NCBI RefSeq assembly: GCF_037042905.1
Contig: NC_087255.1
Span: 31,310,001 to 31,374,000 of the forward strand
DNA from: Lytechinus pictus
Taxonomy: Eukaryota
Length of the DNA: 64,000 nucleotides
Direction of reading: 5' to 3'
A program made the position numbers and the translations under genes. How positions within the stretch are numbered: position 1 is the stretch's first letter; every line of letters starts with the position of its first letter. Below the pieces are notes generated by a model, which was not told where the DNA came from, searched no databases, and was given only the letters and a program-made list of their open reading frames with translations. Shown here in pieces: positions 3,139 through 51,100 of the stretch.

Positions 3139-3796
3139 NNNNNNNNNNNNNNNNNNNNNNNNNNNNNNNNNNNNNNNNNNNNNNNNNNNNNNNNNNNNNN
3201 NNNNNNNNNNNNNNNNNNNNNNNNNNNNNNNNNNNNNNNNNNNNNNNNNNNNNNNNNNNNNNNNNNNNNNNNNNNNNNNNNNNNNNNNNNNNNNNNNNNN
3301 NNNNNNNNNNNNNNNNNNNNNNNNNNNNNNNNNNNNNNNNNNNNNNNNNNNNNNNNNNNNNNNNNNNNNNNNNNNNNNNNNNNNNNNNNNNNNNNNNNNN
3401 NNNNNNNNNNNNNNNNNNNNNNNNNNNNNNNNNNNNNNNNNNNNNNNNNNNNNNNNNNNNNNNNNNNNNNNNNNNNNNNNNNNNNNNNNNNNNNNNNNNN
3501 NNNNNNNNNNNNNNNNNNNNNNNNNNNNNNNNNNNNNNNNNNNNNNNNNNNNNNNNNNNNNNNNNNNNNNNNNNNNNNNNNNNNNNNNNNNNNNNNNNNN
3601 NNNNNNNNNNNNNNNNNNNNNNNNNNNNNNNNNNNNNNNNNNNNNNNNNNNNNNNNNNNNNNNNNNNNNNNNNNNNNNNNNNNNNNNNNNNNNNNNNNNN
3701 NNNNNNNNNNNNNNNNNNNNNNNNNNNNNNNNNNNNNNNNNNNNNNNNNNNNNNNNNNNNNNNNNNNNNNNNNNNNNNNNNNNNNNNNNNNNNNNN
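3139..3796. other. Assembly gap (N run)
   Basis: Run of N. Confidence 1.
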
Positions 3797-13559: not shown

Positions 13560-13693
13560 NNNNNNNNNNNNNNNNNNNNNNNNNNNNNNNNNNNNNNNNN
13601 NNNNNNNNNNNNNNNNNNNNNNNNNNNNNNNNNNNNNNNNNNNNNNNNNNNNNNNNNNNNNNNNNNNNNNNNNNNNNNNNNNNNNNNNNNNNN
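13560..13693. other. Assembly gap (N run)
   Basis: Run of N. Confidence 1.
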
Positions 13694-19790: not shown

Positions 19791-20243
19791 TCATTCTTGA
19801 TATATACCATAAACAATGCCAGTGGCGTACAGGGAGCCGTTTTTGTAAGTATATTGGGCGTAAGAGTCAAATTTATCATTCCAAACACATTGACTTGCGG
19901 AACAGACATCTGCATGCTCTGTGGATCCAATTGTAACCATGGCGACGATTTTATAACGTGGGATCAGCAATTCCTTGACGCGATGCTTGATGACGTCGGC
20001 AAGCTCACGGCAGAGGACTGGACACTTTTGTGGGTCATAGGACTGTGACTCCAGCTGAGCGGTCAAGATATCCTCGACGATCTGTTTGGCGGCACCGACC
20101 ATGAACTTCTTGTCTGGTTCCATCTTGTAGGTGCATTCAAAGCGGACGGCTGGTCGGCCTGGCGCAGTGCTTGCGCCGCCTCTGGCGTCCATGGCGCTTC
20201 GTTGCGTCGATGCCGAATATTTGCTTCCTGCTGTCTGAGCCAT
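19791..20243 (-). CDS. Tctex-1 domain-containing dynein light chain (TCTEX1D1/DYNLT5-like), 150 aa, single coding exon
   Basis: TYKMEP..F....KQIVEDIL..QL....YDP..C..L...IK.RVKEL..PRYKIV..V.IG........S.CVW...DSYA.Y.YKNGSLYA..IVYGIYQE is the full Tctex-1 family signature; ATG in gacATGG context. Confidence 0.93.
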   Translation of the reverse strand: MAQTAGSKYSASTQRSAMDARGGASTAPGRPAVRFECTYKMEPDKKFMVGAAKQIVEDILTAQLESQSYDPQKCPVLCRELADVIKHRVKELLIPRYKIVAMVTIGSTEHADVCSASQCVWNDKFDSYAQYTYKNGSLYATGIVYGIYQE

Positions 20244-30300: not shown

Positions 30301-30834
30301 CAGTACAGACAAACACATACATGTGTAATTACCTTCTTGAGGTTAAAAAATGCTCATAAAAAATGTGATCATGAATTTCTTGAATTGCTTGCTCGTATCC
30401 ACAATCCCATGCATGGCACCTTCAACTATTCACTTTCAAAATCTCTTATTTTAATGCTGATAATTGCTGTCCTTTACCTGGCAGTCGTATATGCTTCCTA
30501 AGACATCGCTGATGTCATCTAGCAATTGCAGATCATAACCATTCTGCTGTTTTGAATCACACCATAATGACTCAACGGCAAACTGTCCCATCTTCCAAAA
30601 CTAAAATATCACATCAAAAATAAAAATATCAAGAAAAGATTTTTTTTGAAGAGAGGTAGATAACACCAAACCAACAGCAATTAATTCTTCTTTCATTCCC
30701 TGACCATCGTGATGAGCATCCAGAGGCATGAATCCTTGGTATCGATCCCAGTTATACACAGAGGTGAACACAGTCAAAATTGAATATCATCACTAATTCA
30801 TGATCATACTATACACAGTCAAACATGCAGTCAA

Positions 30835-32523
30835 CTAACATACAGCAAAATTACTTGAATGGTTAGCAGGCAATGCAGCTATATTTCGGTCTACCCCGAT
30901 TCCTATGCAGGGATCGTCCGGCCGAAATTCCTTGCCGGGCGGCAGTGGATGATTGTTGTTTAGCGGAGGTGAAGGTGGCGGCGACGGCGTGCTGGGCGGA
31001 TGTTGGGACCCTTGTGGCATTTGCGCCATTTGTTCAGGCGTGATGTACGGATCGGCTGCATTGTGGTTGGTGGTCTTTGGACCATCAGTCTTTTGTAGAG
31101 GCAGCACGTCTTGATGAGCAATATACCCGTTTGCTCTGACTTTTGGGAGTCCATTGGGTATGTGCTTGTTAGGGCTCGATATGCTCTCAGGCAAATCATT
31201 CTTATGATCACTTTTTGGATCTGCTAAACTTGGTTGCTTTTGAGGGAGAGATTGTAACTCTGCTTCTGTGATGTAGCCTGAGGGGTTCTTCACGGGGGTG
31301 TTCTGTAAATCTGCAGGAGTGACTGCTTCCTTTGATACATACCCAGAATCTACTGGTACATGAGGGTCTGGCTTTGTGAAAGACGCATCCACTTTCTGAG
31401 GCCGATGATGTGGGACAGAGCTAGAAGGCGATTCTGCTAATCCAAGTGTGCTATAAGCTTCTCCATCTGTCAACGAGGAGTCACTCCCGCTCTGAGATTT
31501 GGAGTCTGCAAGGTTCTTGTGATCGCATTTCAGGTCTTTCTTGGGCATATCTGGGCTCACATGCTTGACAGGCGGGGGTGGTTTTGTGACTGGAGGGGAA
31601 GTGACATATCCTGATAGATCTGTCTTGGAGACCGGGTTAGGGTGGTTTCCAGGAGAGAGAGCAGTGGCGACAATGAACTCTTGTGGAGGTTGGATGCGAC
31701 CGCCCATGGAAACACTTGGCAAACTCATAGCCAATCCTTTGCTCTCTTGGTTGTTGGTTTCATTCCTCGGTTCAGTCTGCCTGGGTGTCCTCTCTCCTCT
31801 TGATTCTGTCGGGGATTGATTGGAGGAATCAGATGCCAACTGGGAGTAGTCGTTGTCTGTCTCGGAGCCTTGGGACAGACGTGCATATGCCAAGGGATCT
31901 TCAGATGGCAACGTTTCTACGCTAGTGATTGGAGTCAGGCCACTCATACCCAGTCGGTGGTAGCTAACCGTTGATTGGCTTCCAAAGGAAGCCTCACTCC
32001 TCTGGTCAGCGAGACCTCGGATTGGAGCTGGTGGTGTTGCACTAGCCTGTAGAGGGACCTGAGACAGCTGGGAATATCCCTCACTGCCATCGCTCATATA
32101 CTGAGCCGCTGCTTCCTTGGATAACATCGGGGTTGAGCAATCTGCACCGTCAACCTCAGCGATGCGGGAGTAGGTCACTGAACCATCGCAGTCAGCTCCA
32201 AACACGGTGTCTTCCTCCTCGTAGTCATCGCTCATGATGCGCATCACGTGCTTTGCAGGTGCTGAGGCCTTATCCTCGTCACTCTCGCTGTTACTACGGC
32301 TTCCAGTATTCTCTTGGACATATCGCAATTCATCAGTGAAGCCGTCCATATCATGGATTCCCTGGTCTGTGCTGCTATTTGTACTAGTACTCTCCTTAGA
32401 AGATGATCTCTCATACGGAAGCTGTAGGAGATTGGTAGTTGAACTGGCCTGACGAAGCGTGTCAAACTTCTCCCCCTCCGTACGCACGCTTAGAAGACGG
32501 CCCTGCAGCTGGAACTTTTCATC
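30835..32523 (-). CDS. Receptor exon 18: 562-aa S/P-rich cytoplasmic tail with many Tyr motifs, ending in TAG
   Basis: Long open frame (ORF 30835..32589), acceptor ttttgcAG at 32524-32525, phase 0. Confidence 0.9.
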   Translation of the reverse strand, partial: DEKFQLQGRLLSVRTEGEKFDTLRQASSTTNLLQLPYERSSSKESTSTNSSTDQGIHDMDGFTDELRYVQENTGSRSNSESDEDKASAPAKHVMRIMSDDYEEEDTVFGADCDGSVTYSRIAEVDGADCSTPMLSKEAAAQYMSDGSEGYSQLSQVPLQASATPPAPIRGLADQRSEASFGSQSTVSYHRLGMSGLTPITSVETLPSEDPLAYARLSQGSETDNDYSQLASDSSNQSPTESRGERTPRQTEPRNETNNQESKGLAMSLPSVSMGGRIQPPQEFIVATALSPGNHPNPVSKTDLSGYVTSPPVTKPPPPVKHVSPDMPKKDLKCDHKNLADSKSQSGSDSSLTDGEAYSTLGLAESPSSSVPHHRPQKVDASFTKPDPHVPVDSGYVSKEAVTPADLQNTPVKNPSGYITEAELQSLPQKQPSLADPKSDHKNDLPESISSPNKHIPNGLPKVRANGYIAHQDVLPLQKTDGPKTTNHNAADPYITPEQMAQMPQGSQHPPSTPSPPPSPPLNNNHPLPPGKEFRPDDPCIGIGVDRNIAALPANHSSNFAVC

Positions 32524-35500
32524 CTGCAAAAGCACAGATAGATTACAAAGTGAGATTATAAAGTGCTGATTTCTTTTATCACCTAACATTTATTCATGTA
32601 ACAGCAGGTATAAATCTCCTCAGAAGTATTTCTGATTGAAAGGGATGACCTCAATACAATGCTTTCAGAGAAAATACAAATGCTTCAATGCTCTCAGGGA
32701 CCTTCTAAACAAATCAGTTTTACATACACATAGAAATTATCTCTCTCTTTGGTACATATATTTTCTGACCTGTTACATTCACAAGATGGTTTCTGCAATC
32801 CCACACCCTACAATGTATGTGTTACATGGTAAATTCAACCATCTTGGGCAGAATTCCTTTTAAAAGTCAGAAAAATCACAATTGGATAATGGATGAACTC
32901 ATTTTTAAGAGAATCTTCAGGGCAAAAATCAATTGAGGCAAAGAGGAACTGGTTTAGATTTGAGCAGAGGAGCTATTGGTGGGGAAAGAGGAAATAGTCT
33001 ATAGTGTAATCCCCTCCCACTTGCATACATGTAGCATGACATCACGTTTCTATGCTCGTGCATACAAGTCACTAGAAAGATGGAAAAACTTTAAATATTC
33101 TTGAGACTTGAAATGCTCCTGATATTCTTGAAACTTTCCTATGTCTGTATTTCATTCCTCCCCTTGAATAACATGAATAGCATATAATCATAAGGTTTAT
33201 CAACAATTCATCCAGGATGATTTGACTTACATTGTGATCAAGAACTGCTTCAATGAAGTATGGATCCGGTGCTGGCTTGAAGAGATCTGACTGCTTCACC
33301 CAAATCAAGAAACAGAAGGCGATGATGACAACGAAACTTGGAAGGAGGATTGCAAGCACAATGGTGACCACAGGCACTGTTGTGAAAGGGACAAAACAAA
33401 CACAAAATGTGGCAAATGATGTAGTAGAAATTTGTAAGCGATGTAATTGGAACTGGCACCTGATGCAACTGAAGTTTGCAACATATGTAACTAGAATTTG
33501 TAATTGACACAACTAAAATTGGCAATTAATTGCATCTGAAATTTGCAAACGATGCAACTGAAATTTGCAACCAATTCAAATAATTTGCCATCGGTGTAAC
33601 TAAAATTGGCAATCAAAATTTGCAACTGATGCAACTGAAATTTGCAATGGATTCAAATAATTTTTTTTTAATTGATGCAACTAAAATCAGCAAACGATTG
33701 CAAATAAGTTTCACACTACACCCATATAGACAGCAGAAGAACAATAATACAAACACAGAACAGACTTCCCATCAAAACCATGCAAGGAAAATCTTTTTTA
33801 GGTAATAAGAAAAAATCCCCACCTTTATGTAAATTGCAGACTTCGAAAAGATGAGCAATGGACATGGTTCCGGCCAGGGGGATGCTATCGACCTCGTTCA
33901 CCGCAAAGACCTCAAAGTTGAAGAAGGTGGCCCCATCCACCAGATCACAGTCAATCTGAATGGTGGCAGAGGGTGTCAGGAGTGGTTCTGTTTCCATCCA
34001 TTCAACATCACTGTCTGCGGGTCTGTAGCGCACCATGTAGTAGTCTATAGGTCCGTTAGGTACCACTGGTCTACCCCAGTTAACTATCACAGTGTCTTGC
34101 GTCTCAAGGTGAACATCAACATTGGTAACCATTAACGGAGCTGTGGAATATTAAAAAAATGCTTTGAAGATCAGAATTCAGTTCTATAAAACCATGACAT
34201 TTAGGTCGTGGGTTTTCTCAACTTCCATGCATTAGATAGCACAGATAATTTTGAATACTTTGTTTAATATTATTGTCATTACTTTAGAAAATTTATGAAA
34301 TACTTCTTGCAAACTTCTTAAAATTGCTGTTCTGTCCAGACAAGCCATTGATCCGGACTGTACAAATGGGTATATCAGAAACCCTGAGCAAATGAAATTG
34401 TGACGTATACCTGTAATCCAAGCTACATAGGGGAAGTAACGAACTGATGGAGAGATTAAAGATTTTGAATGATGATGCTAAAAGGTCGGCTGCAGACGTA
34501 AATAATCCTATCTGATTGGTACAAGTCTGTGCTATCTAGATATCAAACGATAAACTTCAAATCCTTACTTACCACCGATATCTGTCATGACGCGTGTCGT
34601 AGCAGGCAGACTGCAAGCTAGGGATGGATCAGCATTGCTGCAAGCTTGAACATCAATGGTGTAATTCACGTATCCATTCACTGCCAAGGTTGCTGACTTA
34701 ACATCCAAAGACTGTACCTCATCATTGTACTTGATGATGTAGTTCTTGAAGACTCCATTCATCTGCTCTGGTGCTTCCCATACCAGTTGGATCACACTGT
34801 CATTGGAGAAGGTCAGGAGAAGGTCGCGAGGAGGGCTGGGCACTGCAAGTGAAGAGAGATAGGTGGAGATATTAGCTAGTATTATATAACATCAATTAAA
34901 AAAATGAATTAAAAATAATAATAGGTCTTCGTCTGCAAAGTGAAGAGAAACAATAAATAGACATACTTATATACATGTATATACACAATAAAAATGGGTA
35001 AACAAAATACAAAACATTAACAAAATATATAAAAGTGGAGGGACAAAAAAAAGATTCAAAGGTGTAAATAAGTTAAGAACCACATTACAAAACATCCCCA
35101 AGAGACCCAAATTTATCAAATTCACAACTGCTTTTTTTTTCCAAATGAAGTGAAGAATTAAGAGGAAACCCACTTCCTTGGCTGGTCTTGGCTTTCTTTA
35201 GACTTGAAGGAGGCCCTCTGGCAGCAGACGTGGAGGCAGCGATCCTTACTACGTACTCAGTGAATGGCTTCAATCCTGATATAGTTTCTGACAACGGCAA
35301 AGGGCTACCAGTCACATTGAGTTCCTGCTGCGTTCCATCTGAAGGAGGAATAGGTAAAGAATACAAAATACTTAGGACCATGTTTAGAAAATACTGCATA
35401 TGATTACCGGTATAATTTCTTCACAGTGGTGGTGATTTTTTTGGATTTCCAAAACTAAACACAGCAAAATGTTTACTTCTTTGTATACAAAAAATATGAT

Positions 35501-38500
35501 AAAAATATGATTTTCTTTTTTTAGTTTGTTGTTTTGAAGCAAAAAATATGCAATATATAGTGTATAGAATAAAGGATACCTCCTCTTTAATACTTAATTA
35601 CTTCAATCAGAACTTATATCATGACACCCTGCCTCCCTGCCTTTGTCTTACACACAGTAATTAAAAGTAAACACTAATAAAATGCTGGAGAAAAATATCA
35701 AAAGGACAATGGGATGAGGAAACATTGCAATCATAAAGAACTAAGCAAACTTGCTTATGGCTTTTGATTTTTTTTTACCACCCACTAGTTAAGAAAAAAA
35801 AAAACACATCGTGATTATGTCAAAAGTGTTTCAAATATAGACAGTATAACACACTCATGACTTACCAGCGCAATGGGAGCCTGTTGCCAAGGAAACGGTA
35901 ATGGGGGAATCCTGTTCTTGTGCTGGATCTAGAGGGCAGTAGATAATGGTGTAGAATTGAATCTCTCCATTCCGTTGGTTGACTGGCACCTCCTCCCAGC
36001 TCAAAAGAAGTTGATCAGGGTTTGTTGGTACTGGGCTCACTCGCAAGGCCTGTGGTGACCCTGATGGACCTGGGGGAAAAAGAACAGAATCATATAATCA
36101 ATAACTACAACTGCAACTAATACTTCAACTACAACTGCAAGTGCAATTACAACTAAACTACAGCTACAACTTCAACTGCAGCTACAACTACAACTTCATA
36201 GACAACTGCAGCAACAACTACAATTATAACTAAAACAACAACAATAATAATACTAAATATATTGTGATTGATATTCATTTTTCTAAGTACTGGCGACAAT
36301 ATAATCCCAGCTTTTGTATGGCAATAATGATAAAGAGCTCATGCATGCAAAGACATTACTTTCTCAAGAATACCAATTTTATTCACCTGTGTGAGGTGTG
36401 GCAAAATCAGAAATAAAAGCATGGATGTCTGAGATAGTAAAGTTAGTGAGGAAAAGAAAATAATATAAAGGGAGAAAGATAAAATAACAGAGGGAGAGAG
36501 ACATTGCAAGAGGGAGAAACACATCCAAAATAAGACGAGGGCAGGAGAAAGGATAGAGAAAGAGAGAGAGAGAGAGAAGCAGACAGAGGAATAGACTAAC
36601 ATTGCAAACTTACCAGACTGTGATGTCATGACAAATAGAGCAGCTCCTGAACTAGGACCTCGTTTGTTGACAGTCTTCAACGATACCCGATATGATGTAT
36701 ATGCCTCTAGATTGGTTATCTCATGACTGGATTCTGTTGGCGGAACATCGGCACTCATCCTGAAAAAAGGAATGAGGTGTCTTAGTCAAAATTATGATCA
36801 ATTCCTTTCAAAGCATATCCAAAACACTTTTTTTGAAACTTTACAATTAAGGTGATTCACACTTAAAATAAGCTTTATCTTTATAAATTATGATGGCATG
36901 GAGCACTTTGAGTATGAACATGAATAGTTCCTTAATTGAACATATTTATATATATTGTTTTTAGGGCACTGTGTACCGGAACAAGGCTGTTCTGCGGCCC
37001 GAACCATGTTTGGAGTGAAAGGACCTATACCCAATAAGAATCCATTAGGATGGTGTTAAAAATACACCAAGTTGCTTACATTCCACTGTGGTCACTGGTT
37101 TTAAACCACTCCAGTTCGTATCGAAGAACATGTCCTGTGATCCTGCTTGGTGGTTCCCATGAAACCTGGAGCGAACTGGCCGTCTTCGTCACCACCCTCA
37201 GATCTTCTGGTTTGTCAGGAACTGTATTGGTTAAAAAAAAGAAGCGAATGTTGATAAACACTGCCTCTGCTCATTTCCTTTCATATTTGCATGCGTAGGA
37301 AGGTTGTGGAACGGTCTTCCAACAATCATTTGCTCTTGTGACCAGCTTTACAACTCCGATGATAAATCTTCAAGATTGCTTGTAACTAGAAATTATATTC
37401 ATCTTTCTCAGTTGGGACCATAAACAGCATTTATGGTGGGTTTTATTTTTCAGTTTCATTGGCAGCCCTTCATTAGGCAAATAAATACTAGTGCGATACA
37501 ATATCCATGATTTCATTTGATTGGATTAATTAATTAGACTGAAAGCCATACTCTATCCTACTTTGGATTGGATTCATTTATACTGAAATCCATACCTAAT
37601 CTATGGCCCATTAGAATATAAATGTCCATGTATAAAGCATCTAAGAAGAACAGAATTCAGTATACAAAAGGAGTAATACTTAAACCTCAGTTAGCAGACT
37701 GTGCACACATAGTACAGATCATGAACAAAAAATGATGTATCTCATACATTACGTGAAATTACACTAAGAACCGGGTAAATGCTTTTCTACCGTTATGCTC
37801 AGTATTCTATCCAAAGTAAGAAAAAAAAATCCCAGTGTATTATTCACTTCATGTTGAATAAGTCTGTTTCACAAAGCATGTTTTCAATGACTATTTCAGA
37901 AAGTCTTGAACAAATATGGGATTGGCCAATCAAATAGCATAATTTCAGGAGCTTATCACAGTTGTTTGCACCTTGCCATTAATAATTATCTTTGTGAAAC
38001 AGGTTCCATAGTGGGAGAGGACCCTGTCAGTGCCACTCACCTGTGGTTTCATCTTGAAGGGTTGTCTGACCTTTGTTGACCCCGGGGCCGACATCGTTGT
38101 AAGGCGTCACATACACAGTTAACCTCTTAAATCTATCAAGATCTGTTGAAAGATAACAAAATAATAATAAGGAAATTAATACACAGATGAGGCCAAAGAT
38201 GTACTAAATGAAGAGACTGGCAGAGTATGTATTATTGAATTGCACAACTCAATATTTATGATATTCTTCTTGTGGAAGTTGTGGGAGAGATGAGGAAAGA
38301 TTTGAGTTTTGAAATTCTTCTCATATTTAGTTGGAATGTACGAAAAATAGTCTACAACAATATATTGTACTTAAAATGTCTTCATATTCATATTACAATT
38401 ATAAACAGCTGAATGGTCCAGCTGAAAATTTGTGTGTGTGGTCCCATACATTCATTTCTGTGTGTAGTGTTGGTGACTCTCAGCAGAAATGCAACAAGTT

Positions 38501-41500
38501 ATAGTTATTCTGTTGAGTTCAAGAAAAAAAGCATATGTCTAGCAGGGTCCAACTTATAGAAGCAATATATTATAAACAACTTTCCCAGTGAATTTGAAAT
38601 TTAAACTTTCAGAATTTAAACTCACAACCAGAATCAAAAAATAAATCTTTAATAAGCCATTGATTTTTTAGGTGGTCGGTTACACAATGCTGCAATAGAC
38701 TCTTTTCACCAGAGCATTGGTCTTATATTGCCCATGAAATGCTACTACTGCTGCCAGTAATGTTTAAAATGTAAATCATGACATGGTGGTGATGGTGACA
38801 AGATGATTTTGATAGTGATAATCTAAGGAACAAATCATGAACGAATAAAAGGTTTTCTGAAAGAATAGATGTTTAGTATGTGACTTTTTAAACATTGAGG
38901 TTAATCTTTGCTTTAATAGCCTGCTTGAATGATATTCTGCTGTCTTTACAATGAACAAACTTTCTTTATCTTAATTTAATAGAATAATTAAGTCTTTATT
39001 TCACCAAGCAGAACAATGGATTCATCTAAAAAATCCTTATAACCATAAAAGTAACTGAGAATCAAACAAAATCTTGAAGAAACAAGAAATTTGCATCAAA
39101 GTATCAAACCATGCATAAATAAACATATGTATATAAAATTAAAAATCAATTACAAAATTAAAAATCAATTACAAAAAAATAGATATTCTAGAAAATATGG
39201 AGAAAAATACCATTAAAAAAAAACTAACATATATAGAAGTGAACTTAAATAATATAATACAATAGAATATTATTTTCTATCATGCACGCAGAAGGAAACT
39301 CTGCTTCCTTGGAAGAAACTTTAGCTACAGGTTTAGATCAAAATTTACCATGACAATCAATAGGCTTCCAAAAATCTTAACTTAATTGAAAGCATGTGCA
39401 AAACATTAACATAGTGGGCTGGTGCTTGAAAGATAATAATTAAAAAAATATAGAGAATTGAAGATCTAATAGTTTGAAAAAAGATAAAATATGTGCTTAA
39501 TAACATGAGAATTCTGATAAAATACTAAAATCAACACTGCTTGCACAAACATTTAATTATATATAGTTTATTCACATGTTGGTTATCATGTGAAAAAGAA
39601 CTTTGAATTTTCAAGAGAACATTTCCACTATAATTTGAACTTGGAATTCTGTCCATGTTATTATAATTTCATATCACTTATTTGAGCAGGGTATCAATGC
39701 TATAAAATCATGAATACTATCACTTTACCCCACCATCAATACTTTCATATGATAATGAAAAAAATATTCTTTGCAGATGATACAAAATAAAAAAGAATGC
39801 TAAATTCCATGCTGTAAAATCCAACTATGAGAGGAGAATAGAAGGAAAACATAAAATTAGTTTCTATTTGGCAAATTCCAAATAAAACCTGAATGCAAGT
39901 AAAAACATGTTTTTTCTGTAATAAAATAAATAATTAATATCCTATAAGGTAAATCAAAATATAAGAGTGTCAAGATAACGACATGAAAGTGAATTCTATA
40001 GTGTGCCAAAAGTAATGGAATCATTATCGCTGAAACGATAAAGGGTGATTGAATTCATAAGGAAAGAAGAAATCTCAAAAAGGTTAAATAATTTGCGCTT
40101 AGGGAAACTCTCCCGAAAGCTTTACTTACTGGTCAGGTTTGCACGTACGTCATGTGCACCGGAGGGTCGACTTATTTCTAAACATTGTAGAATATATTAA
40201 AGTGTTTTAACATGTAAGCTACATGATGTAAGTTAGCTCAGAGTATGAAACTACTCGGCCCTACGATACAATCAACTGAATTATAAATGAAAAAAAGTCA
40301 ACTGAATTGGATACACATGTGGTGCCAATCCTGGGGTGATGGTTTTTTTTCTTTCAAAGGTTGGGTGGCATTCTATCAAAGCTTTTCCGATCAAAGAGGA
40401 TCCAGGAAAAGATAGCATCTCAAAGCTACTTTTAGGAGACTGCTCCCCTAGTTTATTGAGAAGTTCATGGTTTGAAAGTTAACTCTATGGAAGTGCTCCA
40501 GGGTGAAGAAACAAACGGGACAAAGATATGAGAAAGGAAAATGATGAAGAAGGGGAAAGGGTAGAGCAATGGGATTGGGGAGGATATACAGTAACTGCTC
40601 ACAACAAGGGCCCCTAACACAGAGCTTAGCAATCATCATAGAATATTCTTTTATGATTGATTGCATTGACCACAATGTACAATCAATCATGAAAATCAAG
40701 CGTACGATTAATTGCAAACCTTTGTGTTACAGGATCCTGCAATAAACATTAAACACCACCAAATATCACTCATTGCCCAACTTTGACAAAAGGAAGCAAG
40801 TGACACATCAGTCAAATTTGAGTTATCGTTGTTTCTAAAACACCCTTTGTATGTTGCACATTCAGGCAAAATTTGGGAAAGAAATAATCGTTCTATGGAA
40901 AGTTATTGAAGAAAAAATGCTGTTAAATTGCATTGACGCCTATGTAAATGATGAACACACATTGCTCATTTACAACAAATGATACTTATGTAACTTGCTT
41001 TCTTTTGCCAAAGTATGGCAGCACAGTATAATCAATTCATTTTTAAAGCACAGAGGGATGTTTCACCAAGGTTCCAGTGTGACTGATATTGCTCTTAAAT
41101 TCCCTGCTGCATGTGGTTTGTAATGCATCATCACAATGATCACAATTATCTGGGCGCGTTAAGCAAGGAGAGATTACATTTACAGATTGCGTGCATGTTG
41201 ACACTTAGGCATGTCAAATAGTCAGACCTGACTATTTGTGAAACAACCTTGTCTTAAAATTCATTCCAGATTTTTTTTTTTTGATGGGGTGTGGTGGTGA
41301 ATGCATTATTTGAATATCAACTTAATAAAAAAAAAATCATCATTTCTAGACCTAACTTCCTTGGTGCTTTGTGGAAATTCACACAAATATCTAAATTCGA
41401 GTTTATCTTGGCAGCTGAAAAGTATACAACCTATCAAACTGCAATGTAAATTTATCATATTTCTCTAATAATATCCGCCAATAGTACCCAATGTGGTAGC

Positions 41501-44500
41501 ACATGCATCTTTTTGTCTTCACATACCTTTTAAATGAAACAAGTCGTTGGTAGTAAGTTTGTACTTCACAACTCCACCAGTCTCGTCGTGCACTGATACA
41601 TTGTAGCCAAAGTTTGGACCTCGGTATTCAGTCACTGGTATCGCCTAAAAATTCAGAAAAAAAACATAAATTAAAATTGAAAACAGTAACAAAAATTTGT
41701 AGATCATTTTCATATAGCAAACATAAACATAATTCAAACCTGCACAGTCTGTATGTCATGACATGGGAATGCACTTCACAGAATTGCACACATTTTTTTT
41801 TTGATTACCCTGGTATACACCAAATACAGTAAACCTCTCATTCAGTGAGAATGTAATATTTTGAACAGAGTTAAAGACAAACGCCAGTTGTTGTAACAAT
41901 ATCAAATGATTTCATACAGAATCCAACAAAATAAACACCAAATTGTCTGTATGAATGAATAAAAAATATGTGCCACATAATTAAAAAAGAAATTGTATAA
42001 TGGCTGAGAAATAAGTAAAATAAGCACATCATGTCACCAAATGTTGGGTATTTATCCAAGCAATAATAATACACTGTCCCACATGTGCTTATCTGTGTAG
42101 GTGATCTTCAGTGCAATAGTTTTTCAGCTTAGATTTCATGATTTCACAAAGGTCAGTTTATGCAACTCTACCGGATCTAGATCCACGATGATATAGTGAC
42201 AATAAAACCTTGGCTTTACAGACTTTCTCATGAAATCAGTGTTTCTTCGCATGAGATCAGTATTTACGGTAACTACTTTTATTTATCTTTAATTTATCCC
42301 TATAAAAGAAGCTTATTTTACCTGCCATCCTACAACGACATCTCGAGTGTATGAGTTGGCATCCCCATTTACATTAACGACAGTGAGTGATCTCATGGTG
42401 GCACCAGGCTCTGTGGATGCAGGAAAAAAAACATGTAAAAGAATCCTGGATTATTTCACACTTTACGATTAAACATCAAAGAAACTATATGTGAGCTGAG
42501 TGTAGCCAACAGCTGGAACCAACACACAGCTGGATTACAAAGCAACATCAAGAAGAAATTGAGATGATTATTTTAACAGGAATTGTGTTTATACAGCTTC
42601 AAATATGTCATAGATTTGGGGATGTTTCACTAAAAGGTGAGTCAGACTAAAATCATGATTAAGGCCGAAGGGCACATGATATTTAACATGTAACCTTGAT
42701 ATTTATTGTGACGTTAAGTGTGTACAATGAGCAAAATCTGACTGGTGTGGTGATCAAGTTATATACAGCACATGCAAATAGAAATCAAAGAATGATTTCT
42801 AGTCAGGCTCAAATCTTTGTGAAACACTTCCCTGGGGCCTGCTTCACAAAAATTTCATGGTAACGTTATGGAAACTACCATGGTAACAGGGCTCAGCAGC
42901 CAATCAAAATCAAGGTTTCCATAGCAGTTTTCATAATGGCATGGTTATAGTTGTATTCTTTATGAAGCGGGCCCCAGATATGTATTTCTATTTCGATGGG
43001 CTATTGCTATATCATACCTTCGGCCATGGTTACTACTTCGATGGGCTCAGACCAGGTACCAAATGGGTTTCCATCATAATGGTCAACCAGGACGTCGTAG
43101 GCACAACTGACCCGGACAAAGTAAGTTGTATAAGGGTCAAGAGCTGAGATGATGTATTCTGTGTCTGTTCTGATACTATCCAAAGACACCTAAAATGAAC
43201 GAATAAAACAGATATTCATAACAATCAAAGGAATGTTTAGGAAGGATAGCTCCACTGCTAGAGCGGTGCTTTTGTGTTCCTGTAACCTGGGTTTGATAAC
43301 AAGGGCTAGTGCCCTTTGATAAGGTACATGTCTTGTACTTATAACCAGGGCTCCTTCTTACAAAGACAAGCAACTGATCCAATCAACCACAACTATGGAA
43401 AGCCAGCTACGCCAACATCTAGAATACATGTTTGTTCCAAACAATTTCTAGATATAACGACTCACACCTTTATCGTTGTATTGACAACTCAATGTCCTTG
43501 CTCTTTGTTTACAAAGGACATTGTGCAAATTTCTGGTAGGAAAAATTATTACAATGATGGATTTCCATATAACTGACGTTGATTGGATCAATTGTAACTC
43601 TTTGTAAGACGGGGCCCAGGTCTCTCAAAGAAGAAACTTCGGCTGCCAATTCTCTGATTACTTACTTAAAATAATTTTCATGGTTTCTTAGCAGTCAACA
43701 TTAAGATTTCTCACCTGAAGTTGAGACAATCGACTAGAGGCGTAACAATCAATGGCTTAATCGGTAACATCTTTTAACCTAGCTCGGTGCTTGAAGCTCC
43801 TTCAGCAGCCTTTTCACAATCTCAACACTAAAATCAACAACTCACGTTTAATCACTGAATGTATCCGGTTTCTCATTTTCTAAATTTCCTGTGTCAGTAT
43901 TCCTCATTCTGTACCAACTCCTATCATAATGTGATTTTCAAAAATCGGAATAATCGTCATCCTTAACTCATCTACTTACATTTTGCCATCCTTCCCCTTC
44001 TTTTTTGTACTGCAACCAGTAGTGCAACCCATAGGCAAGGCCAGTTCTGTGCCAATCAGAAGGTTGTTCCCAAGACATGGCAATCTTGCGTCGCTCAGTG
44101 ATCTCTGCTCTTACATTCCCTGGAGGGTTTGGCCGAACTACAAGTGAAAGATCAAGATAAGATTGAGTGATTAGTAAATGTATCAGATTAATAAGACAAG
44201 AAAACAGTTATTTAGATTTTTAAGAGAACTTAGGGTTGCAGTTCAAAGAAATTTTGCTCCAAAGCCATCATTTTCTTTAAATAATAAAATTATCTTGAAC
44301 TAATGTGGTGTCTTTTTGCAACTGCTGATATAGAACAAGCTCTAAAACACAAATCTGTCCAAAATTAAAACACAAGCTCTAAAACACAAATCTGTCAAAA
44401 ATTAACATGATTTTTCTTTTTTTATAAGTATAGACTATGGCATTGCAGAATTGATACTTTCAAGTCTAGAAGAAAACATTGTGGATAAGGGAGGGAAGAA

Positions 44501-47500
44501 TGGACAGAAATGAAATGAATGCCACCCATCCATTCACAGTCAAGGAAAGATTATATTATCTGCTGGTGAGAGAATATCAAAACAGAATAAAAGAATGTTT
44601 AAAAAGTGCAAGAACAGGGAAGCATTTCATGAAACAAAGAGTCAGTGATTTTCACTGACTATAGTTATAAGCTACTGAAATCCGTCCATCTGATTGGCTG
44701 TGAGTAAATAAGTTAGTGATAATCATTGACAAAACTTTTCATGAATGCTCCCAAAGTTATGCAGATGAATTTGTAGAGAAACCCTTTCCTCAGCTCCGAA
44801 TAAAATAGAGGTACGCAGACATTAGGGTTCACAGAGCTTTGCCATTGATCATAGGGCTGTGTATTATTGCATACTACATGATTATGCAATCAGTCATGCA
44901 AATCAGCTGTTCCATCAATAGTTTTGCAGGGATTCAACTCACAACTCTCTCACTAAAATATTTGGAATGCACCATGCAGGATAAAAACAGCCATAGGACC
45001 CTGCAACAGAAAGGTTTGCAGTGAATTGAAAGAACCACTCTGATTGGTTAATGGTCAGAGTTTTGAACAAAATGCACATTAAACGATGATCTTGATTGGT
45101 TATTTAGGGATTGATTGTAAACCTTTGTGTTATGGCCTTACCTTCTGAGTGTGGATCAAATTGTCTATTCAAATGTGAGGTACTATTGCCAAGGGGATTT
45201 TCGCTCACGACAAATATTTCTGTTTGGAAGGGATCGTCGATAACTCGGCAAAAGTTGTTCTCTCGTTCAGGATGGCAGGGTAGAATTTCTCTGTTTCCAT
45301 CAACATAGGGTCTGTAACATGACAACAAAGAAAACATGCATGTTGTTTTGTTTGTTTGTTTGTGACAACCTCAGTACTAAAATATTAATAGCTCTTACTT
45401 GTTTGATTATTAACCCTACTTTAAATGGGTTATTTCAGACCAGGATGCGGCAGGGGGGGGGGGGGCGTCAATCGACTGCCTTTCAGATCTCGGCTGCTGA
45501 TTGCACAATCACCACAAAAATTTGCACATGTTCACGACAATACTGAATAGTAAAATTTTCAAAAAATTAATTTCTTATATTTCCTCACTAATTAATCATA
45601 CTAATAAGCATATGAAATGTGCTCTAAATATGGTTTTTGTGTATGCCTCTGCCTTATACTCACTTATATAGCAATCAGAATGCAAATTTTTGGGTGAAAA
45701 TATCAATTTTTACATTTTTTTTTAATTGCCAAAATGCAATTAACTTTAAATGTAGCTCATTTATTTTTAATTATGTATTTTTTTTTTTACCTTTGATTAT
45801 TATTGTTTTTTCGATGAAATTGTTAGGCACTCTTTTGCAATCATGAATAGAATAAAATAAATCCACTTAAACCAGCAAAAGTATTTTTTAAAAAAATTAC
45901 ACTAAATATGTTTTTTGGGTTGAAAACACCCTTTGCATTGACTTTGTACACAAAATCATGTTTATAAGCAATTTTGGGTCTGGCATGCACTTACAAAATG
46001 ATGTATATTTCAGAACTGCATACTTAGGGTTAAAGGTTTGGAAATATAGGTCTTAAAAGCAGTTGATGTTCTCAGTCTTTGGTGAAACTGAATTTCTTGT
46101 GCATTTCTTTAATTTGGGAGTCCATCGGTCTGAAAGAAATTTTAAGAGTGACCGGCGGCATGATTCAGTAACCATGGGATCGTCCGCTTCGACTCAGCAC
46201 TACTAGTAACGTGATTAGATTATCTGGATCATTATGGAAAATTGAAAGGGAAAAATAACTGAATTTCAATGAATTGAGTTGATTTGAACTTAACTGAATT
46301 GAATATAAATAAAATCTAATGAATTGAAATGAAATGAATTACAATATTTCTCCTTACCCTTGATAGTACAAGGTATCTACAGTCTTGAGATTGGTCGGGC
46401 GGCCATCCTCCCACTCACACCAGTACTCATTGATGTTGGTAGTGTAACAGTTTAAATTCTCTACTGGCTCCGGTGGTACTACATACAAAAAAAATATCAT
46501 GTAAAGTTACTTTCTTTTAATGTATTCTTTCAACACCCCCCCCCCCCCTCTTCTCAACAATGAAAATAAAGGAATCATGTATCATTGAATTTGTGAAATT
46601 ATTAAATCCTTTGTTAAAACTCTTATCCATTTATAAACAAAAAAGAAAAACAGTTCTTGGCAATATGATTCTCTTTGAAACTGTCATGTTTTTTAATTCT
46701 CCACAGTGCCCTAAAATACATGTATTCATTGCTCGACAGAGGGCACTATATCAATGCACCACATCTGAACTATCTTACATTTATACATAAAGAACATAAT
46801 CATCAAAGCATACTCACATCCCACGTGCACTGTGGCCGATGCCTCTAAAAAATCGAAAAAGCTATCACCGGGGAAGGAACAGTAGTATGTGCCTTTGTCG
46901 TCGAAGAGAGCTTCTTGGATGTGAAGACGGGCAACTGTGTCATTAAGCACAGAGTGGGGATGGTGATCTATGGCTTTGTCATAGTCTTTGATCCAGACAA
47001 CGTCAGCTGCCGTTAGGTTGGTGCTGGCAATGTCAATTATACAGTGGATAGTGTGGTTGTCACCCCTATGTAGAATCGCAAAATCTTCTAAGACGGTAGC
47101 TGCAACAGAAGAAATACATTCATTACCTGAAGGCCTGACTCGTAACTGTTTTTTTAACAGAATTATGATAGCAAAGTTACCATAGTTGTAACTCTTTGAC
47201 ATTGAATAAAACCTAATCGAAAGCTGTAAACTCACAAGGAAATTATATTAACCTGTGACCCTGACATCAAACAAAAATACATACACAAACCTTAAACAAG
47301 ACCAAACCTCACCCACAAAAACCTCCCCAAAAAGAGATCTAAAAAACCCATTAACCAAAGTATCCCATAAACATTAAATACAATTACAAACCAAGTGCAT
47401 GTCTAAAGGAATGTGTAATAATTCCTGCTTTCTTGACTCTGAAAAATAGATGTCTGCAAATTTCAGAGTCAAGGGAATATTCCTTGTTTTCTTGGTATGT

Positions 47501-47890
47501 TCCAACTTGATCAAAATCTTGTCAAGGAAAAATAAATGGACAATAATACTTGTACATTTCATGGATGTTGAGATGTGAAATGTGCCTTTTCAGTAACTTG
47601 TGGAGAAGGTTTTTCTCAACTGGGTCTAACAATTATGATTTCAGCAGTCATTTGAACAGCAAGTTAAATGTTTTGACTCAGATATAACATAAACCTAACA
47701 CATAGCTTGAGGTCATAACTTAATACAATGTGAAACACTATAGAGTAAGCCCAACCATGAGCAAGCTCAACCATCAACAAAGCCACGTCCTAACATTATA
47801 ATGTAACAGTTTGAACCTACCTGTTATTGCACCAGAGACTGAGATGAGGGCACACAAGCAGATACAGGTTATCCAGACAGAATGCGCCAT
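30835..47890 (-). CDS. Class I cytokine receptor, gp130/Domeless-like signalling chain; spliced CDS of 18 exons, 1469 aa (SP-Ig-CHR-5xFN3-TM-Box1-long tail)
   Basis: Hand-spliced exons 47821-47890, 46818-47099, 46358-46478, 45142-45311, 43980-44137, 43018-43189, 42322-42410, 41527-41644, 40130-40177, 38041-38142, 37080-37221, 36614-36759, 35866-36069, 35174-35338, 34573-34842, 33823-34140, 33231-33376, 30835-32523 total 4410 nt in one open frame with GT-AG junctions. Motifs GLPPEPVENLNC..YWCEWEDGRPTNL and VRPNPP closely recall gp130 GLPPEKPKNLSC..MRCEWDGGRETHL and VKPNPP; also YFVRVSC...FGTWS and a PxP Box1. Confidence 0.9.
33231..33376 (-). CDS. Receptor exon 17: transmembrane helix and Box1-like motif
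   Basis: VVTIVLAILLPSFVVIIAFCFLIWV then KQSDLFKPAPDP (cf. gp130 IWPNVPDP); donor GTAAGT; phase 1-0. Confidence 0.9.
33428..33712. repeat. Degenerate ~21-bp minisatellite (gatgcaactgaaatttgcaac) in the intron before the TM exon
   Basis: Repeated gcaactgaaatttgcaa / gtaactaaaattggcaa units. Confidence 0.75.
33823..34140 (-). CDS. Receptor exon 16: membrane-proximal FN3 domain
   Basis: VIVNWGRPVVPNGPIDYYMVRY...FNFEVFAVN; donor GTGGGG; phase 1-1. Confidence 0.88.
34573..34842 (-). CDS. Receptor exon 15: complete FN3 domain
   Basis: PSPPRDL...IQLVWEAPEQMNGVFKNYIIKY...NYTIDVQAC; donor GTAAGT; phase 1-1. Confidence 0.9.
35174..35338 (-). CDS. Receptor exon 14: FN3 second half
   Basis: ETISGLKPFTEYVVRIAASTSAARGPPS; donor GTGGGT; phase 1-1. 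Confidence 0.88.
35866..36069 (-). CDS. Receptor exon 13: FN3 first half
   Basis: GPSGSPQALRV...LLLSWEEVPVNQRNGEIQFYTIIYC; donor GTAAGT; phase 1-1. Confidence 0.9.
36100..36255. repeat. (ACTACA/ACTGCA)n degenerate microsatellite
   Basis: Visible directly. Confidence 0.8.
36614..36759 (-). CDS. Receptor exon 12: FN3 second half
   Basis: HEITNLEAYTSYRVSLKTVNKRGPS; donor GTAAGT; phase 2-1. Confidence 0.9.
37080..37221 (-). CDS. Receptor exon 11: FN3 first half
   Basis: VPDKPEDLRVVTKTASSLQVSWEPP...LRYELEW; donor GTAAGC; phase 1-2. Confidence 0.9.
38041..38142 (-). CDS. Receptor exon 10: FN3 end
   Basis: LDRFKRLTVYVTPYNDVGPGVNKGQTTLQDETT; donor GTGAGT; phase 1-1. Confidence 0.87.
40130..40177 (-). 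CDS. Receptor exon 9: 48-nt microexon (EISRPSGAHDVRANLT)
   Basis: Acceptor tttAG, perfect donor GTAAGT, open in phase 1-1, locally GC-rich inside an AT-rich intron. Confidence 0.7.
40588..40738. mobile_element. Harbinger-type MITE; related copies at ~25659-25810, ~28809-28930 and ~44996-45137
   Basis: gggcccctaacacagagctt ... aacctttgtgttacaggatcc termini. Confidence 0.6.
41527..41644 (-). CDS. Receptor exon 8: FN3 middle
   Basis: AIPVTEYRGPNFGYNVSVHDETGGVVKYKLTTNDLFHLK; donor GTATGT; phase 0-1. Confidence 0.85.
41871..42292 (+). mobile_element. Kolobok-like non-autonomous element (intronic copy)
   Basis: TTAA-flanked; homologous to 23986-24389. Confidence 0.75.
42322..42410 (-). CDS. Receptor exon 7: FN3 start
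   Basis: EPGATMRSLTVVNVNGDANSYTRDVVVGWQ; acceptor ccacAG, donor GTAAAA; phase 1-0. Confidence 0.82.
43018..43189 (-). CDS. Receptor exon 6: C-terminal CHR domain with WSXWS-equivalent FGTWS
   Basis: EYIISALDPYTTYFVRVSC...NPFGTWSEPIEVVT; phase 0-1, donor GTATGA. Confidence 0.9.
43349..43616 (+). mobile_element. Harbinger-type MITE, TSD CAG
   Basis: CAG+ggctccttcttacaaag ... ctttgtaagacggggcc+CAG. Confidence 0.8.
43980..44137 (-). CDS. Receptor exon 5: C-terminal CHR domain, first half
   Basis: VRPNPPGNVRAEITERRKIAMSWEQPSDWHRTGLAYGLHYWLQYKKEGEGWQN; donor GTAAGT; phase 1-0. Not in the ORF track. Confidence 0.9.
44617..44752. mobile_element. Harbinger-type MITE
   Basis: gggaagcatttcatgaaa ... 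tttcatgaatgctccc TIRs. Confidence 0.6.
45142..45311 (-). CDS. Receptor exon 4: N-terminal CHR domain, second half (second Cys pair)
   Basis: PYVDGNREILPCHPERENNFCRV...IFVVSENPLG (cf. gp130 VWVEAENALG); phase 2-1, donor GTAAGG. Confidence 0.88.
45414..46029. mobile_element. piggyBac-like non-autonomous element
   Basis: TTAA+CCCTA ... TAGGG+TTAA termini; the TIRs are short, so pairing of the two ends is tentative. Confidence 0.55.
46358..46478 (-). CDS. Receptor exon 3: N-terminal CHR FN3 domain, first half (C-x9-CxW)
   Basis: LPPEPVENLNCYTTNINEYWCEWEDGRPTNLKTVDTLYYQG; donor GTAAGG; phase 1-2. Not in the ORF track. Confidence 0.9.
46818..47099 (-). CDS. Receptor exon 2: Ig-like domain
   Basis: HTIHC...VVWIK...ARLHI...DDKGTYYC (Ig Cys/Trp and DxGxYxC); acceptor ttgcAG, donor GTGAGT; 282 nt, phase 1-1. 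Confidence 0.9.
47821..47890 (-). CDS. Receptor coding exon 1: signal peptide MAHSVWITCICLCALISVSGAIT
   Basis: ATG in aagATGG context, hydrophobic core, donor GTAGGT at 47820, phase 1 matching the next exon. Not in the ORF track. Confidence 0.85.
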
Positions 47891-48100
47891 CTTGCTTTAG
47901 CCTTCCCTACATCGGTCACAGAAGGGCTGCAAGCAGTCCCCTCCTCCGGTTCCTCCTTCCCTCTTTGATCTGGGATCACTAAATCTCAACTTCGAACTAT
48001 CTCCCTCTCTCAATGACCTTTGACCTCGGCCCTAAAAGGTCGGGGTGTGACCTTCAGATTGCACGCTGATTGCGTCACACCTTCAGAATTGAGTAGCAAC
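47891..48100 (-). other. 5' UTR part of the first coding exon; an upstream non-coding exon is implied but not located
   Basis: Acceptor ttcttctgtgtcattatccAG at 48101-48102, followed by GC-richer exon-like sequence. Confidence 0.55.
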
Positions 48101-51100
48101 CTGGATAATGACACAGAAGAAATACACATATAACATCAGGCGGAATACGAGAGACAGCAATCATAGAATGGTACTAACAGTCAAAGTAATAATATACAAG
48201 TACAATCATAATAGTAGATGTACTTGTAGTTATGGTGAAGGCTGTGGGGACATAGCAGTAGTGGATGTATTGTGTTACATTAAACACATGTTCACAGGCT
48301 TTATGAAGTAGAAAACTAGAAGCAGCAATAACAATCTGAAATACTTTAATAGCCCAATCTACTTCAAATCAAGTCAAAAAAAGGTTTATAACCCAAGAAA
48401 ATCAATATATCATCTCCCTTTTAGGAGACTCAAACAAGTCAACCAGGACATACACTAGGCAGGCTTGGAATCGATCATAAAGCTCATGCTAAATTTCATT
48501 AAAGAGGTTCTGGCAAAGATGCTCATACTAGATTTTGTTGCAATATGAAGTCTAGGGAATACAATTATTTTCAGATAGACGAATAAAGAACCAGGAAGAC
48601 GGGTTCTGAAAGTAAGTAAATTTTTATCAATATGTATATATATATATATATAATTGAAAGCTGGAATTCATAAAACTGGAGAGGGGGTATGCTATATAAA
48701 TCTGAATTCTCTGAAAGATAACAAATCTTCCAGCATTTCCTGATACTTAATAAAGAAAATACCGATAGTGGTACTAAAGTGGATTTCCAGGTATTTTTTT
48801 TACACTACAAATACTCATGTACACATACTGATGCGTTCTAGGGCTGTGGCAGCCCAGATTTTGCGAGGTTACCAATTCCCTTCAATGATTTACAAGATGA
48901 GCCCTGAACGTGCATATACTGTACCTCATTCATCATGTGTCGCCATGTGAGAAGACATGGGGACAACACATTTGATATTGCCAAGGTTCAAGCCAAGATC
49001 GAGTTCAATACTCCCAACATACTTTCTACGGGTGCATTCAAACGATTTTCTTCATGCCATAGTACAGTTACACCAGTGAAACCGACCCCAGAGTTTCATT
49101 GGAACCACTATGGCACAGGCTAGAATCATAATATGAGTAACAAATCAAAAGGGACAAAAAGGCCATTGCAGGGTTAGCATTCAAATGTTTTCTACCTTAC
49201 AATGATTCCCCCACAATTCAAGCCCACCCAAAACAGGAAGGTCAACTTGGAGGCACAGTACTAGCTCAAATAATCAAAAAAAGAATCGCAAATCAAAACA
49301 CACATAACAAGGTCACTGCAGTGTGATAGCATTCAAGTGCATTTTCACCAACAATGATTCTCCCTCAATTCAAGCCAACCATCTTGACCCAGGAAGTACT
49401 ATGAATGTAGGTCAAAGTCGTGCATGCATGTGTTTGAACTGGAAGAAAGTCTGTTGTAAAATCATGATCAGGATCTCTGCCACAGGCCTGTATTCCAAGT
49501 TACTGATAACATTTGCCGACGTGGGTCTACAGAATCACCTTTCAAAAAAGGCAACTTTTAGCGTTCCATGTTTGCATCTAAGACGTTCATTTAAAAAAAT
49601 AATAAAACTAAAACATGACTATGGTTTGGAAACCATATTGCCAGGACACATAAGTGTTCATTAAATGCACCACAAGATGTAGGTTAACTGCAGTAAGTAC
49701 CCTCAACTTGAAGTACAATGAGAATAGCACTTGCGAATTCATTCAGTTATTTACATGTGTACAGTTGAAAAATAAATGCCCTCCTTTATATTGCACGTTT
49801 TAAAAATTATTTCAAATTACATCAATTTTGTGTAGACTGATTTAAATCTATTTACAATAAAAAATGATTAATTTCTTTTTAAAAATCATGTAGGCCCTAG
49901 ATATACTTTTAAAAATAATTATCACTTTTTAAATTGAGTAAATTATTCTTTATTTCCGCATCTTTTTGACGTGATAAAACATAGACTTGATATTCACCAA
50001 TTCAAACAGACTATGTAAATAAATTCATGATTGTATAAATCAACACAGGAGACTGATGATCTGTGACTATCTATATACATCAACTAAACTTGTGGCCTAT
50101 GACTCAGAAAGGTAATATGCTATGGGTATGAGAGAATATGAGCCTGTTCATATAATTGGCTTGTTGGTCGAAACCAAAGTTCAATGTTAACAAACTGAAA
50201 TAAAATTTTGAGGCCACTTTTGACCAGTTTGGGGTAAATACATGTAATATAGTGCAAGGCCAGAATGACATTATTGCTGCTCTATCATTTTTGTTTTGAA
50301 GAAGATTACAGACCTCATCAGAAGTGAAATTGTGATTTGACAAATAACAACTGCTTTTTTTCCATGCACTTTCACAGCTTACCAGGTGAATTTCTGCTTA
50401 GTTTTAAAGCTCGAAGAGCCTCAGGAATGGGCATTATTGTGCAACTCTACTTTCCTTACATGATTATTCATGAAATTATAGTCAATATCAATTGCAGTCC
50501 CATGTGCATGCTTCAAGAATACAGATATTTCAAACCTCTTCACTTATATCAGGAAACCCATTGCTTTACACTGTTTATATTTGAGTCACTGAAATGAGAA
50601 ATCTTAGACACTAAAAAATTATTTTTCTATCAGGATATAACTTTTTCTCTCCCTCCAAGAGATCATAAGAACATCTATTGGGGTTGAATTCACTTTCTGA
50701 TGAAATCTAAATAATAATGGATAGTATGTACCAGCTTTAACAATATTTCACAGGAAAACTCTATTGGCATTTTGATTGGCAATCATAAAAAAGGGTGGAT
50801 TTCATTACTGCCAGTATTACAACTAAAATGACATCTTAGAAACAAGGTTTTGTTCTTTGATGAATTCTATAGTAAATCAGTAATTTGTAGGCACTCAAAA
50901 TTTTCACCCACAATGAGCACTCTGTACAGGGTCATAGAAAGGTTAAGGCGGAGAATAATGGCTGAGGAACAGAGACAAAAAAATGACGAGATCTTCCTTG
51001 CCTATCGTGTTGACAGATTGACATATGAAACATGAAAGCCAAGAAATTCATAAAACATTCTTTTTATTCGAATGGACTTCTTATTGCCGAAATACAGGAA

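Follow-up and report, generated by a model that had tools for sequence, protein, structure and literature searches.

A probable gp130-type class I cytokine receptor gene of the sea urchin Lytechinus pictus, annotated as sidekick-2-like

Gene model and transcripts of the locus

The analyzed stretch of Lytechinus pictus DNA (contig NC_087255.1, positions 31,310,001 to 31,374,000; 64,000 nucleotides, hereafter the window) carries on its minus strand, at positions 30835–47890, a gene that very probably encodes a class I cytokine receptor of the gp130 type, namely, the echinoid member of the "tall" receptors, in which an immunoglobulin-like (Ig) domain and a cytokine receptor homology region (CHR) are followed by several fibronectin type III (FN3) domains in a single-pass type I membrane protein. 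When the minus strand between 30 and 49.5 kb was read from stop to stop, colinear open segments of Ig, FN3, transmembrane (TM) and tail character emerged; donors and acceptors were scored and then chained by phase. The resulting model comprised 17 coding exons, all on the minus strand and all separated by GT..AG introns, with phases 1, 1, 2, 1, 0, 1, 0, 1, 1, 2, 1, 1, 1, 1, 1 and 0 after exons 1 to 16. The coding sequence of 4362 nt, which opens with the ATG at 47890 and closes with the stop codon at 30835–30837, was translated into 1453 amino acids (aa) without internal stops. The initial annotation had described an in-frame chain of 18 exons (signal peptide, Ig, CHR, five FN3 domains, TM, Box1 and tail); the order of these elements was correct, whereas the number of coding exons was one too high. 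The rebuilt protein did not differ from RefSeq XP_054764525.2 of L. pictus at any of the 1453 residues, and 11 residues distinguished it from XP_054764525.1. Both records, together with XP_041474701 of L. variegatus, made up the RefSeq cluster retrieved by a phmmer search with the exon-15 FN3 domain, which matched the 1453-aa protein at residues 738–842; all three are named "protein sidekick-2-like".

Exon 1 (47821..47890) contains the ATG and a hydrophobic signal peptide (aa 1–23), and exon 2 (46818..47099) encodes the N-terminal Ig-like domain (aa 24–117), which matched the Pfam families ig, Ig_3 and I-set, weakly also Lep_receptor_Ig, and was aligned with gp130 domain D1 in the profile search. 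Domain 1 of the CHR is divided between exon 3 (46358..46478; phase 1 in, phase 2 out), with the motif C-x9-C-x-W and sub-threshold Pfam matches, and exon 4 (45142..45311), where a motif test found the second cysteine pair, C-x8-C, and which was aligned with gp130 D2. CHR domain 2 is divided between exon 5 (43980..44137), which begins with VRPNPP, matched half of a Pfam fn3 domain and was aligned with gp130, and exon 6 (43018..43189), where FGTWS occupies the WSXWS position in the alignment with the gp130 motif WSDWS. The C-x9-C-x-W and VRPNPP motifs quoted in the initial annotation were thus located in exon 3 and at the start of exon 5. The third FN3-type domain (FN3-3) is encoded by exons 7 (42322..42410; first third, aa 325–354), 8 (41527..41644; middle) and 9 (38041..38142; end), of which the last two were identical in the model and in RefSeq and all were covered by the fold model. 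Exons 10 (37080..37221) and 11 (36614..36759) encode the two halves of FN3-4, exons 12 (35866..36069) and 13 (35174..35338) those of FN3-5, and each of the four matched Pfam fn3. FN3-6 lies entirely in exon 14 (34573..34842; Pfam fn3, E-value = 1e-7) and the membrane-proximal FN3-7 in exon 15 (33823..34140; Pfam fn3, E-value = 1e-7). Exon 16 (33231..33376) encodes the TM helix and the juxtamembrane Box1, and exon 17 (30835..32523), present in RNA-type contig runs, encodes 562 of the 588 aa of the cytoplasmic tail and the stop codon.

The transcript check was performed by placing the raw reads of two stranded RNA-seq runs and two sets of transcript contigs on positions 42300–47950. All six predicted junctions of this region (47821/47099, 46818/46478, 46358/45311, 45142/44137, 43980/43189 and 43018/42410) were found with base-exact positions in both reads and contigs, so that the junction mapping proposed in the initial annotation bore out exons 1–7. 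These junctions span the signal peptide, the Ig domain and the four CHR exons and reach into exon 7. Each was supported by 6–30 reads per run with several start points and had CT..AC ends on the plus strand, and read coverage was confined to the side expected of minus-strand RNA. A transcript contig of 1801 nt contained exons 1–7 in order and extended beyond the region by 356 nt more in the 5′ direction and about 320 nt more in the 3′ direction. Read depth upstream of exon 1 persisted to 47950, and the 5′ untranslated region accordingly extends at least to this position; the 356 nt of the contig past 47950 indicate a possible additional 5′ non-coding exon. The gene is genuine and expressed. 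An Rfam search of positions 30000–49500 gave no match. Two intronic segments, 42876–42922 after exon 6 and 43375–43620 after exon 5, had very deep RNA coverage on both strands, with many loose ends and odd joints, and look like abundant interspersed repeats outside the mRNA of the gene.

Ligand-binding region and its likeness to gp130

The first domain of the CHR contains the pattern C128-x9-C-x-W-x29-C-x8-C179, which agrees with the published consensus CX(9-10)CXWX(26-32)CX(10-15)C (PMC1963337) except in the last spacing. The four cysteines and the CxW motif were invariant in all six echinoderm proteins compared, and in the crinoid and ophiuroid proteins the spacing between the third and fourth cysteines was 10–17. 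The FGTWS sequence (aa 310–314), in which only the second WS of the motif is kept, was the same in three urchins, whereas WSDWS or WSSWS was present in the same column in the crinoid Anneissia japonica and in two proteins of the brittle star Amphiura filiformis; the first WS was most likely lost in the echinoid line. Variants of WSXWS, for example, that of GHR, are tolerated in the class I family (PMC1963337). The CHR is split over four exons, and its flanking and internal intron phases (1, 2, 1, 0, 1) are presumably equal to those of the vertebrate genes, a phase rule for which no paper text was found. According to Liongue and Ward, the complex splice structure of GP130 is kept in most class I receptors and in the gp130-like gene of Ciona (PMC1963337).

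In a phmmer search of all solved structures with aa 20–330, places 1 to 14 were occupied by gp130 (E-value = 5e-21), and query residues 92–307 were aligned with gp130 residues 95–304 across both CHR domains, with pairing of GLPPEP..NL.C....CEW, the second cysteine pair, FDP...V.PNPP and the WS of the G strand. The identity of the CHR to that of gp130 was approximately 22–25%. The next matches were CRLF1, CNTFRa, LIFR, IL-11Ra, EBI3, IL-12Rb2, LEPR, IL-6Ra and G-CSFR (1e-10 to 1e-6), while titin, contactin and LAR appeared from about 1e-6 and in CHR domain 2 only. Similar ranking was obtained when a profile built from the Ig-CHR regions of six echinoderm proteins was searched against the solved structures: gp130 was first over Ig and CHR (5.8e-36), followed by CRLF1 (8.5e-29), LIFR (5.5e-25) and IL-12Rb2 (6e-24), whereas the best non-receptor chain was titin (9.5e-19), and non-receptors matched only part of the query, mostly CHR domain 2. 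Placement among the receptors was based on this ranking against solved structures instead of a CHR tree. Word-indexed homolog searches, in which the Ig-CHR of the urchin, the crinoid and the brittle star served as queries, gave echinoderm proteins and, as the sole non-echinoderm match, one newt OSMR. An AlphaFold2 model of aa 20–335 (predicted local distance difference test, pLDDT, 69; built from six sequences) was compared with the PDB using Foldseek, and domains D1–D3 of gp130 were again first (8dpu_A, E-value = 5.5e-19, TM-score 0.54; also 1i1r_A and 1p9m_A), while Ig-FN3 adhesion proteins, and contactin, titin and protein tyrosine phosphatases, had TM-scores of about 0.3. Thus, the assignment to class I cytokine receptors of the gp130 type proposed in the initial annotation held in sequence, profile and fold comparisons, in which generic FN3 proteins ranked far lower.

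The public names of this protein and its relatives suggest another identity. In RefSeq, the relatives are called "sidekick-2" or "sidekick-2-like" in three urchins, "sidekick-1-like" and "receptor-type tyrosine-protein phosphatase F-like" in the brittle star, and "uncharacterized" in the crinoid, and the Pfam families that exceeded their thresholds were fn3, FN3_DSCAM-DSCAML_C and Ig alone. Both observations would agree with an Ig/FN3 adhesion molecule of the sidekick or receptor-phosphatase kind, whose likeness to a CHR would be generic FN3 similarity. The urchin protein resembles sidekick-2 in combining Ig and FN3 domains with one TM segment. However, a sidekick comprises about 2200 aa with six Ig domains, thirteen FN3 domains and a PDZ-binding end, whereas the protein encoded here has one Ig domain, seven FN3-type domains (two of the CHR and five others), Box1, no phosphatase domain, a length of 1453 aa and the end -FAVC. 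Moreover, gp130 was ahead of all adhesion proteins by about 15 orders of magnitude over both CHR domains, the fold ranking concurred, and the cysteine pairs and CxW of CHR domain 1, the WS remnant and Box1 were all present, which makes such an adhesion molecule extremely improbable. The names most likely follow an FN3-dominated best match. The mislabeling as a phosphatase- or sidekick-like protein had been foreseen in the initial annotation and is evident in the RefSeq names; the cause suggested there, that the CHR exons are too short to be detected, does not apply, as these exons are present in the RefSeq model.

Precomputed Pfam lists of four of the proteins (P0001, P0025, P0053 and P0153) also contain PF28033.1, which is outside the Pfam copy searched and may be a newer model over the Ig or CHR region of the receptor.

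FN3 domains, membrane segment and cytoplasmic tail

Four Pfam fn3 domains were identified within residues 425–845 (E-values from 5e-17 to 1e-7), the best of them at aa 425–526. Residues 325–427, encoded by three exons, had no Pfam fn3 match and only weak sequence matches in the PDB. The predicted structure of this part (aa 322–432 in the fold model) was a seven-strand sandwich with a pLDDT of 71, and its best structural matches were leg domains of gp130 (TM-score 0.73, root mean square deviation 2.1 Å), followed by other FN3 domains. Five FN3 domains are therefore counted after the CHR, four by Pfam and FN3-3 by predicted fold. A hydrophobic helix of 21 residues (aa 845–865), over which the hydropathy is 2.94, precedes LIWVKQSD-LFKPAPDPYFIE; LFKPAPDPYFIE (aa 873–884) lies seven residues past the TM segment and, in a motif-level test, contains the proline-rich Box1 (FKPAPDP). 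The crinoid protein has IFKPFPEPRFIE at this position. Identity to the S. purpuratus protein was highest in the TM segment with Box1 (96%), followed by the tail (82%), CHR domain 2 (75%), CHR domain 1 (70%) and the Ig domain (60%).

The tail of 588 aa is rich in serine and proline, disordered in appearance and without a Pfam family. It contains 16 tyrosines, all of which are kept in L. variegatus and S. purpuratus. Five are in YxxL motifs (aa 1041, 1079, 1104, 1117 and 1248) and five in G/P-Y-[VI] motifs (aa 1197, 1286, 1308, 1358 and 1384), and Y1079 and Y1197 are kept in the crinoid as well. YxxQ, the classic STAT site of gp130 and Dome, was found at none of the 16 tyrosines in the three urchin species, which makes STAT docking uncertain. 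The same absence, the full conservation of the five YxxL and five G/P-Y-[VI] motifs, and the 82% conservation of a tail twice as long as needed for a simple JAK/STAT relay would also be expected of a class I receptor by descent whose main output is not STAT, and whose YxxL motifs, resembling immunoreceptor tyrosine-based inhibitory or activation motifs (ITIM/ITAM), and G-Y-[VI] motifs recruit SHP-type phosphatases, Syk/Src-type kinases or adaptors, possibly in an inhibitory or scaffolding role. Such an output is considered clearly improbable, since Box1 is intact, its conservation reaches to the crinoid, and genes of the JAK and STAT types occur in the genome. The absence of YxxQ is compatible with STAT, given that YxxL-type sites serve for STAT5 docking in several vertebrate class I receptors.

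Signaling components, related receptors and significance

Genome Pfam searches revealed a JAK-type locus on contig C8 (15090740-15090928, minus strand; locus L013, 976–1842, minus strand), where an open frame of 288 aa contained FERM_F1 (E-value = 8e-14) and FERM_F2 (E-value = 5e-9); it is likely the only JAK gene that this urchin has. A STAT gene is indicated on contig C3 (19811126-19813816, plus strand; loci L009, L010 and L012) by three exon matches to STAT_alpha in colinear order (best E-value = 1e-12). When all six frames of the genome were searched with Jak1_Phl (PF17887) and STAT_bind (PF02864), no match reached E ≤ 0.001, probably owing to short exons. Contig C3 also carries a second class I receptor locus, with an exon of CHR domain 1 (25990842-25991015, minus strand; PPQPVDNITC-x9-C-x-W) and, approximately 6.8 kb downstream, a TM segment followed by a Box1-like FKKNPRLPQPYIPPE (25983850-25984155, minus strand; loci L007 and L017). 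This short distance indicates that its ectodomain is shorter, and the second receptor is a candidate heterodimer partner. Because of this locus, the gene described here is one of at least two class I receptors; it had been called "the JAK/STAT receptor" of the animal in the initial annotation, which was right as to its being a class I receptor and wrong as to its being the only one.

By analogy with the family, a secreted four-helix-bundle cytokine would bind the Ig domain and the CHR elbow and bring the receptor into a homodimer or into a heterodimer with the second receptor of contig C3. JAK held at Box1 would then be trans-activated and phosphorylate the tail tyrosines, on which STAT and other SH2 proteins (SHP2- and SOCS-like) may dock; as YxxQ is absent, docking would probably occur via the conserved YxxL or G-Y-[VI] motifs.

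Comparison with known systems revealed the greatest similarity to gp130 (IL6ST), which has the same order of signal peptide, Ig, CHR, FN3 legs, TM, Box1 and tyrosine-rich tail, was the top match by sequence, profile and predicted fold, and likewise has its CHR over four exons. gp130 has three FN3 legs, a tail of approximately 280 aa and four YxxQ sites, whereas the urchin protein has five legs, FGTWS in place of WSDWS and a much longer tail of 588 aa without YxxQ. The other tall receptors and their relatives (LIFR, OSMR, LEPR, IL-12Rb2, G-CSFR, CRLF1 and CNTFRa) share the CHR (E-values from 1e-10 to 1e-6 in the single-sequence search, and as low as 1e-29 when the profile was used); however, all score well below gp130, LIFR and LEPR have two CHRs, and CRLF1 and CNTFRa are soluble or GPI-linked. 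With respect to the vertebrate gp130/LIFR/OSMR/LEPR/G-CSFR group, the urchin gene is best regarded as a probable co-ortholog and not as a one-to-one ortholog of gp130. Drosophila Domeless, which acts through one JAK and one STAT, is similarly an invertebrate class I receptor with additional FN3 domains and an incomplete WSXWS (PMC3296744), but its cytokine homology domain is in one exon (PMC1963337), while the urchin CHR is in four. The gp130-like receptor of Ciona intestinalis, likened here by its description, is also from an invertebrate deuterostome, although of another phylum, has the gp130 topology and a gp130-like splice structure, and was proposed by Liongue and Ward (2007) to signal as a homodimer (PMC1963337). 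Since such receptors are known from flies, Ciona and molluscs, an echinoderm receptor was to be expected.

Two related Ig-CHR-FN3 receptors were present on one 414-kb contig of the crinoid A. japonica (P0025 and P0156) and two on one contig of the brittle star A. filiformis (P0053 and P0090), which suggests local duplications. The two brittle-star models, of 840 and 868 aa, had no clear TM segment or tail; they may represent soluble forms or be truncated as models.

The assignment of the L. pictus gene to the gp130-type receptors follows from sequence, profile, predicted fold, cysteine pattern, Box1 and the four-exon CHR. Several observations weigh against it. In Pfam searches of the whole protein, LIFR_D4, IL6Ra-bind, EpoR_lig-bind and IL4Ra_N scored 18–21 bits against cut-offs of 22–27, and LIFR_N was also below its cut-off; with exon 3 alone (39 aa), EpoR_lig-bind, LIFR_D4, IL6Ra-bind, LIFR_N and IL4Ra_N had E-values from 1e-3 to 2e-2, all under the curated cut-offs, and EpoR_lig-bind scored 21.9 against a cut-off of 27.3 in the crinoid relative. 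These scores reflect the sensitivity limit of the models and not a trait that defines the family. The spacing of 8 between the third and fourth cysteines is two residues short of the published 10–15 (PMC1963337), WSXWS is degenerate in echinoids, with the strict five-residue motif absent, and the confidence of the AlphaFold2 model of the Ig and CHR is moderate. The linkage of exon 10 to exon 17 is based on the RefSeq model and not on reads. To these are added the lack of YxxQ in the tail and the fact that JAK binding and STAT activation by the urchin receptor are what we infer from the behavior of the family. Finally, six-frame genome Pfam searches for IL6 and CNTF gave no usable match, a weak negative that makes no statement on absence.

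According to a broader and more speculative reading, echinoderms would keep an ancestral deuterostome pair of gp130-type receptors, and in urchins the output would have been rewired, with five legs, half of WSXWS and a long conserved tail that lacks YxxQ and carries ITIM/ITAM-like YxxL as well as G-Y-[VI] repeats, so that JAK would be coupled to partners other than those of the STAT3 type. This reading is rather unlikely at present; if true, L. pictus, a genetically tractable urchin, would be a system for finding the pre-vertebrate helical cytokine.

Apart from the receptor gene, the window contains, downstream of it, a single open reading frame of 150 aa at 19791–20243 (minus strand) that contains a complete Tctex-1 dynein light chain domain (Pfam, E-value = 8e-28), and two runs of N at 3139–3796 (658 bases) and 13560–13693 (134 bases).

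In an analysis of 2012, the purple sea urchin was considered to lack any evident system of signaling through cytokine receptors (PMC3296744), and in a survey of 2026, an "IL6R" of S. purpuratus was included in a tree of IL6R and gp130, with no accession or detail in the text (PMC13203501). The gp130-type receptor was described as hidden in the initial annotation, which is true of its misleading public names and less so in view of the S. purpuratus homolog in this survey. The present assignment is a useful correction rather than a new kind of receptor, with five legs, half of WSXWS, a long conserved tail without YxxQ and the misleading name as its noteworthy features. It corrects a systematic mis-annotation, since names of the sidekick and receptor-phosphatase type hide echinoderm gp130-type receptors from keyword- and name-based surveys. 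An expressed full-length receptor together with JAK- and STAT-type genes in one genome provides a handle on JAK/STAT signaling in a basal deuterostome and on the missing cytokine.

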